This document shows positions 2,521 to 38,796 of a stretch of 64,000 bases of DNA, piece by piece. The stretch lies in the sequence record PP355768.1. One strand, written 5' to 3'. The position numbers and the translations under genes are program-made. Within the stretch, counting starts at the first letter, position 1; the number at the start of each line of letters is the position of its first letter. The notes beneath the pieces are model-generated. The model was not told the DNA's origin. It made no database searches and saw nothing but the letters and a program-made list of their open reading frames with translations.

Positions 2521-3132
2521 TTATTGACCCGCAGCTTTACGGGCTTCTTGCTCTCGGTGCGCAGCCATACGATCTACACGTTCGTTGATCTCTTTGGAGG
2601 TCAGCCAAATATCCTTACCACCTTCTATCATCTCTGTGATCTCTTCTAGAGAGAAGAACGGGTAGTACAGGTCTAGCATCATATCCTCAAAGAATGAGTT
2701 GAACTGATCTGCATAGTGCTGGATCTCGTTTTTACCCTTACCATAGTGCGCACCACGATAGGTATGGCCCATCAACATAACGTAAGGGTGCACCAACCAG
2801 CCGTGGCAGGCTAGGAAGATTGAGCAGGCAGCTGATGCTGATGGCCCAACCAGATGCCCAATAACGGTTCCCTGGCAGTTCATGATAAGGTTGCACAACT
2901 GAACTGCTGTATCAACGTATCCGCCGGGACTATTAATATAAAGATTAAGAGTGTCTCCCTCTTGCATAGTTGCCAGAGTGACTGATAGGTCGCGGTAGTA
3001 GTCTACATCGACTATCGGCCCATCGAGATGATAGTGGTAAATATTATACTCTGCCTTAGTCGCCACCAGGGAGGCGAAGTAATTAGGAGTCTTATTGCCA
3101 CCTTTCTGCTCTACGTTATTAATTTGTCCCAT
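2521..3132 (-). CDS. ClpP-like protease subunit
   Basis: LYINSPGG and SASAA motifs of the ClpP/crotonase family. Confidence 0.85.
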   Translation of the reverse strand: MGQINNVEQKGGNKTPNYFASLVATKAEYNIYHYHLDGPIVDVDYYRDLSVTLATMQEGDTLNLYINSPGGYVDTAVQLCNLIMNCQGTVIGHLVGPSASAACSIFLACHGWLVHPYVMLMGHTYRGAHYGKGKNEIQHYADQFNSFFEDMMLDLYYPFFSLEEITEMIEGGKDIWLTSKEINERVDRMAAHREQEARKAAGQ

Positions 3133-34480: not shown

Positions 34481-34628
34481 TATCCTGTTATGGCCCAACG
34501 GTAGTTGGTGTTATCGCAGTGATGTACAAGATATGAGTCACCTATCGGACGACTATCAGGTTTTACGAGCGGACTCTGAGCAGTGGCACGAATTCATCCA
34601 AATGGGGGAAGAATATGCTGGTCAATGA
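34464..34628 (+). CDS. 54-aa hypothetical protein
   Basis: Start refined to MYHPDD; GGAGGAG SD. Confidence 0.7.
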   Translation: MYHPDDILLWPNGSWCYRSDVQDMSHLSDDYQVLRADSEQWHEFIQMGEEYAGQ

Positions 34629-35016
34629 AAAGGTTGTTAATCAAGGGGTTGGGCTAGTTCCTTGGGCTGAAATTCCTCTGGACGTAAAAGAGTCTCTTCT
34701 GGACCATCTTCGTGTGTGGTGCGATAATATGGAGGTCTACTTCGATTATGACAACATGCACCTGGGGCTATGGGTTCCTATGGACGAAGATCAAGATGAA
34801 GTCCTAGACTGGGGCGATCTGACTGAGATGGGGCTGGTGTTTGCACTAGGCTACGTGTGTCTGCTGCGTGAGTCCTATATCCCGGTTGGGGTTACAGGTG
34901 TTTCAGCAGGTATTTGGGTCGGACGTAATGAAGATTATTATGCTCCGGAAAATATTAACGGTTGGATCCAGGTGCTGCGTCGCTTCGGTTTCCAAGTTGA
35001 AGGGTTAACTAAATGA
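34615..35016 (+). CDS. Hypothetical protein (paralogue 1)
   Basis: 133 aa; similar to the next ORF. Confidence 0.75.
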   Translation: MLVNEKVVNQGVGLVPWAEIPLDVKESLLDHLRVWCDNMEVYFDYDNMHLGLWVPMDEDQDEVLDWGDLTEMGLVFALGYVCLLRESYIPVGVTGVSAGIWVGRNEDYYAPENINGWIQVLRRFGFQVEGLTK

Positions 35017-35408
35017 GTATTCCTAAAATGGAACGTATCTCCTGGGCGGATATCCCCAAGGAATTGATTGATGTAGCAGAGAATCTGCTGCGAGCCGCGT
35101 TGAGGGACGAGGAGCTTTGCTTCATCATCCAACATGACGTGTGTGTTGGTTTGTCCAAAGGTAGTTTGGCCCAGGATTATGAGATCCTCTTTGATTGGGA
35201 TGACCTCTCGGATCTGGGGCTAATGGTTCTGGTGAACAACGTTGTGTTCCACCCCTCTAATTTTGCAGCATTCCGTGAACCGGGGGCGGGTATTTCTCCT
35301 GGGTTCTTGGTAGCTGACGAGCCTTGGACGTATGCTCCAGAGGTTCTTCGTGAGGGCAAACAAAATGCCTCTTCTAACTCAATTAATATTATGGGTTGGA
35401 ATGCCTAG
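35013..35408 (+). CDS. Hypothetical protein (paralogue 2)
   Basis: 131 aa. Confidence 0.75.
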   Translation: MSIPKMERISWADIPKELIDVAENLLRAALRDEELCFIIQHDVCVGLSKGSLAQDYEILFDWDDLSDLGLMVLVNNVVFHPSNFAAFREPGAGISPGFLVADEPWTYAPEVLREGKQNASSNSINIMGWNA

Positions 35409-35418
35409 TTGAACACTT

Positions 35419-35448
35419 AGACCAGGGGATTATCCTCTGGTCTTTTCT
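35419..35448 (+). terminator. Rho-independent terminator
   Basis: AGACCAGGGG/CTCTGGTCT stem followed by TTTCT. Confidence 0.7.
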
Positions 35449-35490
35449 ATGCTTAAACCCAGTTACCTACCACGTATTTAAATATTTTAC

Positions 35491-35519
35491 TTGCAATCTC
35501 GCCACGATTTTTATATAAT
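35491..35519 (+). promoter_or_regulatory. Promoter upstream of the structured leader and obp
   Basis: TTGCAA-17-TATAAT. Confidence 0.8.
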
Positions 35520-35525
35520 ATATTC

Positions 35526-36000
35526 ATAGGTTGAGAGAAATGATGTGAGTTACAAAACTGACATAATTCCTCTCATTCACTTCCGAGCATACAGAACAGT
35601 CCGGCTGCTACATGCTTGGTTGGGTTTGGCTTACTGGAAAATTGATTCCGAACGGAATTATAGATAATTGATCTAGAATGCGGGTAAGAGAGGTTGGCAT
35701 CGCGAGGCTCTCAGATATTTGTTCGTTAGTCATGTGGAGCAAATAGCACCGCGGTCTGAAATGACCAAGAAGTGAAGCTGTAAGTAGCAACGTACCTCTG
35801 CGCAATAGCGACGAATAGGGGTCAACCACATGGAGCTTAGCGGCGATTACATGCTGTGTGGGAGTTGTGCGAAGCGGCCAGTTCTAGCAATGAGGAAGTG
35901 ACCACCCCTCCATCTATAAGGAAATTTGTTGAGTCAGTGGACTTTTAAGCTGTTCTATCCTTGATAGTTCGAGATCGCTTTATTCTTCAACATAGGAGAA
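35526..36000 (+). ncRNA. Candidate ~470-nt structured RNA or leader of obp
   Basis: No plus-strand ORF; over 10 helices with G:U pairs valid only on the plus strand. Confidence 0.6.
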
Positions 36001-36006
36001 AACGTA

Positions 36007-38796
36007 ATGTTTTCTATTCTAGAAGGACACGCGGGTTTTTCCCGCGATCCCGCTTCCGGAAACTGGAAGGAAGTGAAGACAACTGATTACCTTTTTGCGA
36101 AGGAGTTTTCTAACGAGCATCCAGAAGGTAAGCCAGCCTCAATGCCCTACAAATTTAACGTAGTGGATACAGTTGACCCAAAAAATCTTAATGAAGCGTA
36201 TGAGCTGATGGTTCAGCTCACTCAAGACCCACATCTCGTAGCAGTACGAGGTACATGCTTAGTTGCAGAGAAGGCCGTGCGTCGTAAACGTACTAACTTC
36301 AAAATCGACCATAAGAGCAATATTATTGCTATGGACGTCGATGGAATCTCTGATACCGGAGGATGCGACAGGTTTGACATTGTGGGTATGGGACGTCATG
36401 TCATTAAGTTATTAAATAGCATCAGCGAGGACATGTTCCCGCTTAACGCAGGGTTTATCGCCCATGCGTCGTCTTCGGCTGGAATTAAGCCAGGGATTCG
36501 TATGCACATGCTATTAGAGAGTAATATCCCTGTTACTCAGGGTCAGTTAAAGTTTCTATTTACGTCCCTCAATGATAGCTCTCGGCAGAAGTATGGTTTT
36601 GATATTGCCGACTTAGCTTATTATTCATCTGTACAGCTACACTATTTCGCTGACCCGATTTTTCGGGATCAGTTTACCGATCCGTTTAAAGCGGAGGGTA
36701 AGCCACGTCTGGTTAAAGTTAACGGTGCTAGGATTGAACTGCCCAATACTATGCCAGATTATGAAGCCACTCGTGGGGAGTTTAAAGAAGAGTTTCTATC
36801 CCTACTTAATCAGATTAAAGGAAAGCGTGTAGCCTCTGAAAAAGTGGAACAAACCATTGCAGAGCTGGAAGAAGCAGAGGATGGTGTTTATCTGCGTATT
36901 ATTCCTAAACTGTACCACAGAGCGCTGGAGGACGGTGTTGATTTCGCTTGGCTTGAGAAAGAGATTACCTCAGCTCTGTCCGATTATATCAACACGAAGG
37001 ACAACTCCCGTAGTCTTCAGGATTACTTCAATAACGGACGTAAGCAGGCGTTAAAAGCGTTTGTGAACAACTCTATGCGAGATATTCCTGAGTCGAATGT
37101 TAAAGGAGTTCCTGTACACAAGTTGACCTCTGATAGCCCCGATGGGATGAACTATTTGAAGATCAACCGTCCACCGCCGGAAGGTCATTTAACGTTTATC
37201 AAGGCTTCTCTAGGTACTGGTAAAACCACCGCAGTGACGAAGTGGCTAGAACGTGATCAGCTGAAAGGTAATTTCCTTGCAGTTACGAACACACGTGCCC
37301 TTGTTTCATCTAACGCCAAGAAGTTTGAAGCCGGACAGTATGATAAGTCTGTAGATATGTTAAACTTCAAGCGCGGTGCCATTGATCGTATGTCTACTAC
37401 TATTCACTCAATCCACAAGTTTAAAAACTTTGTTGGGCAGATCGATGTTATCTTTATCGATGAGTGCGATGCAGTTATGAATGATCTGTTATTCGCTCCA
37501 GTCGTTAAACAACGTCGTGAGTGTATCTCAGTTCTTCGTGAAATTCTGCTATCTGCAAAAGTAGTTATCCTGTCTGACGGGGATATCAGTGCAGAAACCA
37601 TTGAGGCATATGGATCTCTCATAGATTTTGACAAGCCGGTCTCTTATTATAAACATCATCGTAAGATGTTGTCTGATGCTCAGGCATATGAGTTCCCTGA
37701 TGAATCCAGTATTTGGGTTGCTCTCCAAACGTCCCTAGAGATGGGAGAGAAATCTATTCTGGTGTCCGACTGTGGGCCGGATGAGTTAAACGAGAAAGGC
37801 CTGACGTTAAGAAGCAATACAGGTGCGATTGTTAAAGAGATTCACTCAAACTCTACCTCTGATATAGATATTCGTCGTATCTTGGATTATACAACGAATG
37901 AGTTAATTGAGCAGCAGATTGATTGTCTACTGTGTAGTCCGTCGGTAACGAGTGGTGTTGACTTCAACTACTTCGACAACGTATTTGTTATCACCCGTAC
38001 CGCTAACCAGGCGCCGAACATGCGCTTCCAGGCAATCAGGCGCGACCGAGGAGCTAAGAATATCTTCTATTTCATCGATAAGTCCACCAGCGGATTCTCT
38101 GCGGGTTCGGAGCAGTACAACATCGATGAGGGTTGGATGGAGTTAGCCCAGCAACTTTACGTTAAACGTCGAGAGCTAGAGTCACGTAACTTTATCAGTA
38201 CTCTGCGGTACTATCTGCTGGATCAGGGAGCAACTATCGATATCTTCAGTGAAAGCTGGGGTAAGATTGATAGCTCGGCCGCAGAGTATACTGCTGAACG
38301 AGTCTCTGCTATTTTGAGTAGTACCCCGGATTGGTGTGCACCTCGTCATGCGGACGCATACGAAGCCAAGCTAATGCTGGTCAAGTATTTCCACCTGGAC
38401 TCTATCAAGAGTATCACACAGGAACATGCGGAGATGTGGATTAGTAAGAAACCGCACAAACGGGCGGAGTTCTTCCACAAACTTCAAGATATATTCTGGA
38501 AGGATATTAAGAAGTGTTCTAACGTGACGATTAGCCCCTTTATTGAAGCCCTGAAGAAACACAAGAAGGACTTCTTTATTAGGACAGGACAGTCTGCCAA
38601 CCCTAAATATGCCCGTATGTACCTAACTCAAATGGGTATTAATAAGGAAATGGAGACGGAGCAGATCGTAGACTGGTATCGAACCTACTGTTCTATCGAG
38701 GGTATCTCTGTACCGTATGAGTTTATGACGGACGAGGAGAAGGCGCTGGCCGATGAAGCGCAAAACGAACTTGGAGTACGTAATGAGCAAGCGTGA
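36007..38796 (+). CDS. obp: Replication origin-binding protein (SF2 helicase-like)
   Basis: 929 aa; ASLGTGKTT and FIDECD motifs; T5 synteny. Confidence 0.9.
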   Translation: MFSILEGHAGFSRDPASGNWKEVKTTDYLFAKEFSNEHPEGKPASMPYKFNVVDTVDPKNLNEAYELMVQLTQDPHLVAVRGTCLVAEKAVRRKRTNFKIDHKSNIIAMDVDGISDTGGCDRFDIVGMGRHVIKLLNSISEDMFPLNAGFIAHASSSAGIKPGIRMHMLLESNIPVTQGQLKFLFTSLNDSSRQKYGFDIADLAYYSSVQLHYFADPIFRDQFTDPFKAEGKPRLVKVNGARIELPNTMPDYEATRGEFKEEFLSLLNQIKGKRVASEKVEQTIAELEEAEDGVYLRIIPKLYHRALEDGVDFAWLEKEITSALSDYINTKDNSRSLQDYFNNGRKQALKAFVNNSMRDIPESNVKGVPVHKLTSDSPDGMNYLKINRPPPEGHLTFIKASLGTGKTTAVTKWLERDQLKGNFLAVTNTRALVSSNAKKFEAGQYDKSVDMLNFKRGAIDRMSTTIHSIHKFKNFVGQIDVIFIDECDAVMNDLLFAPVVKQRRECISVLREILLSAKVVILSDGDISAETIEAYGSLIDFDKPVSYYKHHRKMLSDAQAYEFPDESSIWVALQTSLEMGEKSILVSDCGPDELNEKGLTLRSNTGAIVKEIHSNSTSDIDIRRILDYTTNELIEQQIDCLLCSPSVTSGVDFNYFDNVFVITRTANQAPNMRFQAIRRDRGAKNIFYFIDKSTSGFSAGSEQYNIDEGWMELAQQLYVKRRELESRNFISTLRYYLLDQGATIDIFSESWGKIDSSAAEYTAERVSAILSSTPDWCAPRHADAYEAKLMLVKYFHLDSIKSITQEHAEMWISKKPHKRAEFFHKLQDIFWKDIKKCSNVTISPFIEALKKHKKDFFIRTGQSANPKYARMYLTQMGINKEMETEQIVDWYRTYCSIEGISVPYEFMTDEEKALADEAQNELGVRNEQA

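Follow-up and report, generated by a model that had tools for sequence, protein, structure and literature searches.

In T5-like phages, the leader that precedes the obp gene is apparently a large structured RNA, shared by the whole family and not described before. Comparison of relatives strongly supports a plus-strand RNA fold that T5-like phages have kept by means of compensating base changes. The sequence-only reading had proposed a structured RNA of ~470 nt on the plus strand between a promoter and obp, and covariation, strand asymmetry and conservation in at least eight lineages bear this out. The window, meaning the whole stretch of DNA analyzed and the reference for all positions below, is the first 64 kb (64,000 nt) of Klebsiella phage vB_Kpn_AM_K6 (hereafter K6; PP355768; Sugarlandvirus, Demerecviridae, T5-like). 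The same 681 bases recur at 97.8-100% identity in 80 other Klebsiella phage records. The record itself, at 261,044 bp, is more than twice as long as the ~111-kb genomes of other Sugarlandvirus phages and is possibly concatemeric or assembled from a mixture.

In K6, a 598-nt gap separates a 131-aa ORF (35013-35408) from the 929-aa obp. A terminator, a promoter and a long ORF-free leader had been read from the letters of this region, and all three were found by our scan, with no ORF of at least 41 aa in the gap. The signals and the gene that frame the leader are as follows.

35419..35451, plus strand: intrinsic terminator with an 11-bp stem (35419-35443) and a T run, closing the operon of two DUF7415 genes.
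35491..35519, plus strand: strong, near-consensus sigma-70 promoter TTGCAA-17 nt-TATAAT, with 10 of 12 consensus matches in the promoter scan.
35994..36009, plus strand: Shine-Dalgarno (SD) sequence AGGAG (35994-98) and obp ATG.
36007..38796, plus strand: obp, homologue of T5 D2, 929 aa; Pfam Herpes_ori_bp (E = 8.8e-7, residues 395-534), PHROG 3712.

The terminator is annotated in the GenBank records of phages Sugarland and Spivey, and its stem covaries in the alignment of relatives. The promoter elements TTGC and TATAATAT are unchanged across 12 relatives, and the T5 GenBank record carries a "putative promoter" at the equivalent site. Judging from the promoter, transcription is predicted to start near 35526, 7 nt past TATAAT. 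A plus-strand scan from the promoter to obp detected no further promoter and no terminator, so the K6 RNA is predicted to form the first ~480 nt, the 5′ leader, of the obp mRNA. The leader promoter is the sole predicted obp promoter in both K6 and T5, and no terminator follows the RNA core in any lineage examined. The match of Obp to solved herpesvirus OBP structures is limited to the helicase core, as is the Pfam match, so the "origin-binding" name derives solely from helicase-core similarity. Upstream, two tandem paralogues (34615-35408) of 133 and 131 aa, assigned to Pfam DUF7415 and PHROG 2502, run up to the terminator. The second is named "RNA-binding protein" in phage Spivey, the DUF7415 protein has no sequence relative in the PDB, and T5 has an equivalent pair (T5p104 and T5p105) ahead of its RNA.

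The order of terminator, promoter, ORF-free gap of ~600 nt and obp is kept in at least eight lineages. This layout is present in T5, in Yersinia phage phiR2-01 and in many Tequintavirus and Epseptimavirus contigs, and also in Pectobacterium phages My1 and DU_PP_V, Providencia phages PR1 and PSTCR5, and Proteus phage PM135. Phage Eos, which shares the layout and 69% identity, is the sole relative outside Sugarlandvirus that can be recognized at the DNA level. We extracted 33 distinct leaders, each taken from the position 7 nt past TATAAT up to the start codon, which fall into six groups at 90% identity. Their length is 471-497 nt, or ~100 nt greater when the first hairpin is followed by an insert, and the differences between lineages are not multiples of three. 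Between groups, leaders are 41-48% identical, compared with ~78% for the Obp proteins. The T5-type promoter and first two hairpins were found in at least 440 phage records. A search with the P2-loop motif matched 32 viral contigs, all of them T5-like, and a metagenome scan with this motif returned close relatives only. The leaders of T5 and Epseptimavirus share 98% identity across nt 1-110 and 84% at the 3′ end; their central ~300 nt (L014 versus L005, nt 111-420) are 35-48% identical and form the same helices. The divergent center of these sequences points to an exchange of modules or to a core that evolves very rapidly with compensation.

Several lineages carry additional segments. An optional segment of ~100 nt with its own stem-loop domain lies exactly between P1 and P2 (the 35578/35580 site of the window), bounded by the 8-nt repeat UUUUUCUU. 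A single copy is present in each of 51 phage records, in T5-type and Epseptimavirus-type leaders (for example L009:2455-2560, and also L010, L015, which is phiR2-01, and L033), and the segment looks like an accessory RNA domain, not a mobile repeat. The PM135 RNA (L016:2205-2964) is homologous and longer, at 764 nt, and is preceded by the same kind of promoter; it has a long-range closing helix, and the distance from its start to the CUUAGCGG hairpin is ~350 nt, as in the others. In PM135, two sigma-70 promoters match the consensus at 12 of 12 positions: one drives the RNA, the other lies ~40 nt upstream of obp, and the interval between the two lacks a terminator. The -35 box of the obp-proximal promoter is overlapped by a second CUUAGCC-like motif. 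In Providencia phages, ~130 nt of extra sequence lie between the RNA core and obp. Vibrio Demerecviridae have 600-860 nt without a substantial ORF before obp (L017:2161-2872, L050:1200-2064, L051:1223-1860 and L052:1-1042), and Vibrio phage River4 has a promoter-like site ~650 nt upstream of obp; in these Vibrio-phage loci, the CUUAGCGG hairpin covariance model and the sequence motifs detected no homology. In some Epseptimavirus phages (L005, L007 and L012; obp at 3001), the obp frame remains open beyond the conserved SD and start codon, extending as much as 66 codons upstream into the structured RNA, so that gene callers could yield a falsely extended Obp of 995 aa.

The map of the leader takes its coordinates from the K6/Eos comparison, refined by eye against Eos, and runs from the 5′ end as follows.

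35529..35578, plus strand: P1, the 5′-terminal long hairpin, with compensatory pairs in five lineages.
35580..35622, plus strand: P2, a hairpin with a covarying stem and the conserved loop AUACAGAACAGUCCGGCUGCUACAU at 35589-35613.
35623-37 with 35942-56, plus strand: P3, the long-range closing helix between sites ~320 nt apart, with 4 compensatory changes between K6 and Eos.
35643..35660, plus strand: local hairpin UGAUUCC-GAAC-GGAAUUA, with the Eos equivalent UGAAAUC...GAUUUCA read from the alignment.
35658-65 with 35912-19, plus strand: long-range helix; K6 versus Eos, 2 compensatory changes, 1 one-sided, 0 broken.
35667-79 with 35881-91, plus strand: long-range helix; K6 versus Eos, 4 compensatory changes, 3 one-sided, 0 broken.
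35680..35774, plus strand: domain A, from the K6 versus Eos comparison, with junction helix 35680-85/35746-52 and hairpins at 35688-35712 and 35716-35745.
35753-66, plus strand: domain A hairpin GGUC-UGAAAU-GACC, followed by the conserved AAGAAGUG (35767-74).
35777..35878, plus strand: domain B, with helices 35777-81/35874-78 and 35784-91/35864-70 and a hairpin at 35794-35822.
35826-35861, plus strand: PM hairpin of domain B, around the motif GCUUAGCGGC (35835-44) with the invariant core CUUAGCGG.
35869-74, plus strand: GNRA-like GCGAAG of domain B, after the PM hairpin.
35892-95/35907-10, plus strand: PB1 hairpin with the conserved loop AAGUGACCACC.
35955..35967, plus strand: PT, a small hairpin CUAUC-CUU-GAUAG after the closed domain, with the obp ribosome-binding site ~40 nt downstream.

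P3 seals a closed core of ~330 nt with two multi-helix domains, and the conserved unpaired motifs of this core are AAGAAGUG, CUUAGCGG, the GNRA-like loop and AGUUGCCA. P2 reads CCGAGCAU/AUGCUUGG in K6, CAAUCC/GGGUUG in T5 and GAGG..GUG/CAC..CCUC in Eos, with 8 compensatory changes between K6 and Eos, and the loop that it presents is conserved across groups in RNAalifold as AUACGGAACAGUnnGGCUGCCCCAU. The P3 strands are AACUAUUAC/GUAAUAGUU in T5 versus AACUGUUAC/GUAACAGUU in Epseptimavirus, and a conserved CUGUUC directly follows the 3′ strand. The domain A hairpin has an equivalent in Epseptimavirus, My1 and DU_PP_V, with different stems and with GAGAAGUG following it. In the PB1 region, L005 has AAGGGG/CCCCUU and L006 has AAGUGG/CCACUU, a compensatory difference. 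The counterparts of PT are CCAUC/GAUGG in Eos (compensatory) and CUAUUC/GAAUAG in T5, and the hairpin is also present in My1 and DU_PP_V. The closed domain ends 50-75 nt ahead of the start codon in every lineage compared. Among these lineages, no conserved helix sequesters the SD or the start codon; the predicted pairing of the SD is 0.35-0.98, with partners that differ by lineage.

Two further pairings were considered and rejected. A pseudoknot between the P2 loop (GAACAG) and CUGUUC is compatible with the sequences of K6, T5 and Eos, but My1 and DU_PP_V lack the 3′ motif. In K6, the P1-P2 linker (35576-35584) is a perfect 9-nt complement of obp codons 21-24 (36069-36077), a pairing that is not conserved in other lineages. 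The 9-mer GAAGTGAAG of the linker recurs beside the domain A hairpin (35769-35777).

Ten helices had been proposed from the K6 letters, and relatives back eight of them. TGAGAG/CTCTCA with its nested pairs corresponds to P1 and CCGAGCAT/ATGCTTGG to P2, both of them backed by covariation, as are GAGAG/CTCTC, GGTC-TGAAAT-GACC, CCTCT/AGGGG and CCACAT/GTGTGG. Covariation supports TATTTGTTC/GAGCAAATA weakly. ATTCC-GAAC-GGAAT is supported by eye against Eos; for this region (35643-60), RNAalifold favored a long-range alternative that is broken at 4 pairs in Eos. The remaining two did not hold: in place of a local TAGAT/ATCTA hairpin, 35658-65 pairs better, and with covariation, with 35912-19, and TGTTGA/TCAACA shows no preference for strands of its own lineage (154 of 720 permutations do as well). 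The overall topology also needed correction, and the closing helix P3 had been missed.

The single-sequence minimum free energy (MFE) fold of K6 is not unusually stable against shuffles (z = -1.39 for the plus strand and -0.67 for the minus strand). Excess stability over shuffles is a weak criterion for real RNAs. Since the z-score was not significant, it counts neither for nor against the fold; the helices could not be judged from K6 alone, and relatives were compared instead. RNAalifold, run separately on each group, returned the same plan of P1, P2, the long-range P3 and inner helices with single-stranded motifs. Between K6 and Eos, the 150 pairs predicted from K6, Eos and two Sugarlandvirus variants include 35 compensatory, 17 one-sided and 18 broken pairs, whereas slid controls, in which the 3′ partners were moved by 1-3 columns, gave 0-5 compensatory pairs. 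Even the structure predicted from K6 only has 16 compensatory pairs against Eos (1-4 in slid controls). In the 5′ domain, 18 of 37 predicted pairs are compensatory across five lineages.

A pairing-profile alignment recovered P1, P2, P3, PM and PB1 and was too unclean for whole-molecule pair counts, so anchored strand tests and a domain covariance model were used. For the strand tests, helix strands were taken from anchor-fixed windows in six lineages, and duplex energies were compared for own-lineage and other-lineage partners over 720 permutations. Own-lineage duplexes were more stable for P1 (-16.1 versus -9.9 kcal/mol), P2 (-8.7 versus -4.6), P3 (-21.3 versus -8.3), PM (-10.2 versus -5.1) and PB1 (-8.2 versus -5.8). 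The true strand assignment was the best or tied-best of the 720 permutations for P1 (tied), P2, P3 and PM, being uniquely best for P3 and 1/720 for PM; the ties reflect the identity of the T5 and Epseptimavirus sequences in the stretch concerned. Control pairings put through the same permutation test gave no signal (linker with coding region, 110/720; linker with mid-region, 362/720).

The PM hairpin was analyzed as a domain of its own. In its alignment, 94.2% of cells are paired, versus 64.6% in shuffles, and all 8 of 8 stem pairs covary with changes on both sides. The covariation score is 0.757 versus 0.186, a value that 0 of 500 shuffles reached, and slid controls scored 0.06-0.19. A covariance model built from six PM sequences gave one match per genome in further lineages, and did not fully align My1, DU_PP_V and PM135, which have shorter loops. 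Two checks attached to the sequence-only reading turned out to support it: leader helices covary, and the region encodes no conserved peptide.

The direction of the molecule is also evident. The duplex is more stable on the plus strand in 23 of 24 helix-by-lineage comparisons, the whole-leader fold is better on the plus strand by 13-45 kcal/mol in every lineage, and the alignment fold reaches -126 kcal/mol on the plus strand versus -87 on the minus strand. G.U pairs make up 62 of 335 (18%) and would be C.A mismatches on the opposite strand, which agrees with the argument from G:U pairs made when the region was first read. This strand asymmetry, together with a covarying helix that spans 320 nt, indicates that the folded molecule is the sense transcript and not a DNA cruciform.

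No known RNA family accounts for the leader. A search of Rfam 15 (including GOLLD, ROOL, OLE, HEARO, riboswitches, RNase P, tmRNA and 6S) with the K6 leader gave no match at E up to 10, and none was obtained at E up to 1 for the leaders of T5, PM135, My1, PR1 and Eos. ARAGORN detected no tRNA or tmRNA, and a full-text literature search found no description of the element.

The sequence-only reading had named three possible roles, a cis-regulator, a primer or R-loop RNA and a partner of Obp, with no preference among them. Regarding function, the reading we place first, with a confidence that falls somewhat short of even, is that the RNA is a cis-acting regulatory leader of obp. The leader lies in the 5′ UTR of obp on the same strand, with this layout in eight lineages. 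Given the sole promoter, the terminator upstream and none downstream, and a core that ends 50-75 nt before the start codon, a cis-regulator is the simplest reading. The transcript from the conserved sigma-70 promoter folds, over its first ~480 nt, into the large multi-domain RNA. Under a cis-acting model, the partner of the compact core would be a protein of phage or host origin, perhaps Obp, or else a small ligand; its binding would set the amount of Obp through access to the ribosome-binding region, mRNA stability or both, while P1 would shield the transcript from 5′-end-dependent decay. The E. coli rne 5′ UTR, the T4 gene 32 leader, ribosomal-protein leaders and riboswitches are structured cis-acting 5′ UTRs that bind proteins or ligands, and the obp leader shares with them a structured 5′ UTR with a 5′-terminal hairpin. 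Unlike these autoregulated leaders, it is much larger and more complex and has no recognizable conserved SD-sequestering or terminator platform. The main points against the cis-regulatory reading are indeed that no conserved helix sequesters the SD or start, that there is no terminator-type expression platform, and that ~15 helices far exceed what is typical of cis-regulators. In PM135, moreover, the second promoter directly before obp means that the RNA is kept where obp need not depend on the leader. The PM135 promoter, the Providencia extension, the large size and the missing SD helix keep stand-alone and replication-linked alternatives alive.

A broader proposal, possible but rather doubtful in our estimation, is that the leader opens a new class of large structured RNAs (~430-490 nt) specific to T5-like phages, with a compact, long-range-closed core that acts beyond the tuning of obp translation. 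The core might license or prime replication together with Obp, or might work as a processed RNP or ribozyme in host takeover.

That the RNA is a stand-alone large noncoding RNA seems unlikely, although it deserves serious consideration. Here a processing event, such as a cut at PT or at the base of P3, would release the core, which would act in trans as an RNP scaffold, as a ribozyme, or as a sponge or decoy that captures a host factor, and the place of the RNA before obp would reflect common early expression instead of control of obp. The closed core of ~330 nt, with its many conserved unpaired motifs and GNRA-like loop, is nearer to large noncoding RNAs than to leaders, and there is no consistent SD-sequestering helix. 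PM135 retains the RNA although its obp has a perfect promoter of its own, Providencia phages have the ~130-nt 3′ extension between core and obp, and an extra domain of ~100 nt between P1 and P2 is tolerated in 51 phages. On the other hand, none of the lineages examined has a terminator after the core, the leader promoter is the only predicted obp promoter in K6 and T5, and we know of no processing site in the leader RNA. Gene order is conserved throughout the family, so synteny argues neither for nor against a stand-alone RNA. GOLLD, ROOL, OLE, HEARO and raiA resemble the leader RNA in having several hundred nucleotides, many covarying helices, unpaired motifs and long-range closure, and GOLLD and ROOL are often borne by phages or prophages. 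Unlike these RNAs, the leader RNA is restricted to T5-like phages, matches no Rfam model, and always lies 5′ of one gene without a terminator of its own.

Quite unlikely, in our view, is a role at a replication origin, in which transcription and the folded transcript would serve initiation beside the initiator gene. The RNA would then be a pre-primer or R-loop former whose hybrid is controlled by the fold, in the manner of ColE1 RNA II, or a platform for loading Obp. The leader is directly upstream of the gene annotated as an origin-binding helicase, and T5 obp starts ~59.5 kb into the 121.75-kb genome (49%). Electron microscopy in the 1970s reportedly placed the beginning of early T5 replication near the middle of the genome. 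The leader is similar in length to RNA II, a ~500-nt transcript from a strong promoter for which folding matters, its fold is conserved at the RNA level, and it too lies beside replication functions. Unlike ColE1 RNA II, the leader has no antisense promoter of the RNA I type (no minus-strand promoter-like site was found within 35520-36006), a coding gene follows directly, and the element belongs to a phage and not a plasmid. There is also a likeness to the T4 R-loop origins (ori uvsY and ori 34) and the T7 primary origin, where a promoter lies upstream of a region in which the transcript can prime. These origins need a promoter and a short AT-rich unwinding element but no conserved RNA fold, whereas the leader has an elaborate conserved fold and no AT-rich element; the leader is 45-50% GC (0.40-0.51 along its length), which is not below the value of its flanks. 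Repeats in the leader are only two-copy ones (9-27 nt, 70-100% identity), with no iterons or repeat array. The lack of an AT-rich element, iterons and an antisense promoter weakens the classical-origin version. Furthermore, the GC-skew turn at 24-30 kb tracks gene orientation and not the leader site, and the "origin-binding" label comes from helicase-core similarity only.

A DNA-level element, either a cruciform or a fixed-length protein-binding spacer whose RNA fold has no function, would fit the conserved length and the position between two transcription signals, but it is very improbable given the covariation of helices between sites 320 nt apart, the 18% of G.U pairs and the consistently lower stability of the minus strand.

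The possibility that the gap encodes small proteins can practically be dismissed: ORFs of 22-40 codons exist and some GenBank records annotate them, but none is conserved in place or frame from one lineage to the next, the reading frame over the invariant CUUAGCGG varies, with UAG in one frame, and leader lengths do not differ by multiples of three. No conserved peptide is encoded. Many GenBank records show up to four "hypothetical proteins" of 30-40 aa within positions 35396-35948 of the window, and the frame comparison indicates that these ORFs are probably annotation artifacts.

T5 has long been a classic model among phages, and phage therapy and biocontrol make wide use of its relatives. 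Yet GenBank records leave this ~480-nt element blank, label it a "putative promoter" or fill it with spurious small ORFs, and the small "hypothetical proteins" annotated inside the leader should be removed. The size and complexity of the fold are matched in few bacterial or phage RNA classes, and it precedes the gene presumed to start replication. Among large structured RNAs, which are poorly understood, E. coli K-12 and T5 would offer a tractable system. To our knowledge, the replication origin of T5-like phages has never been defined at the sequence level, and the element would provide an entry point to the control or the initiation of replication in this family.
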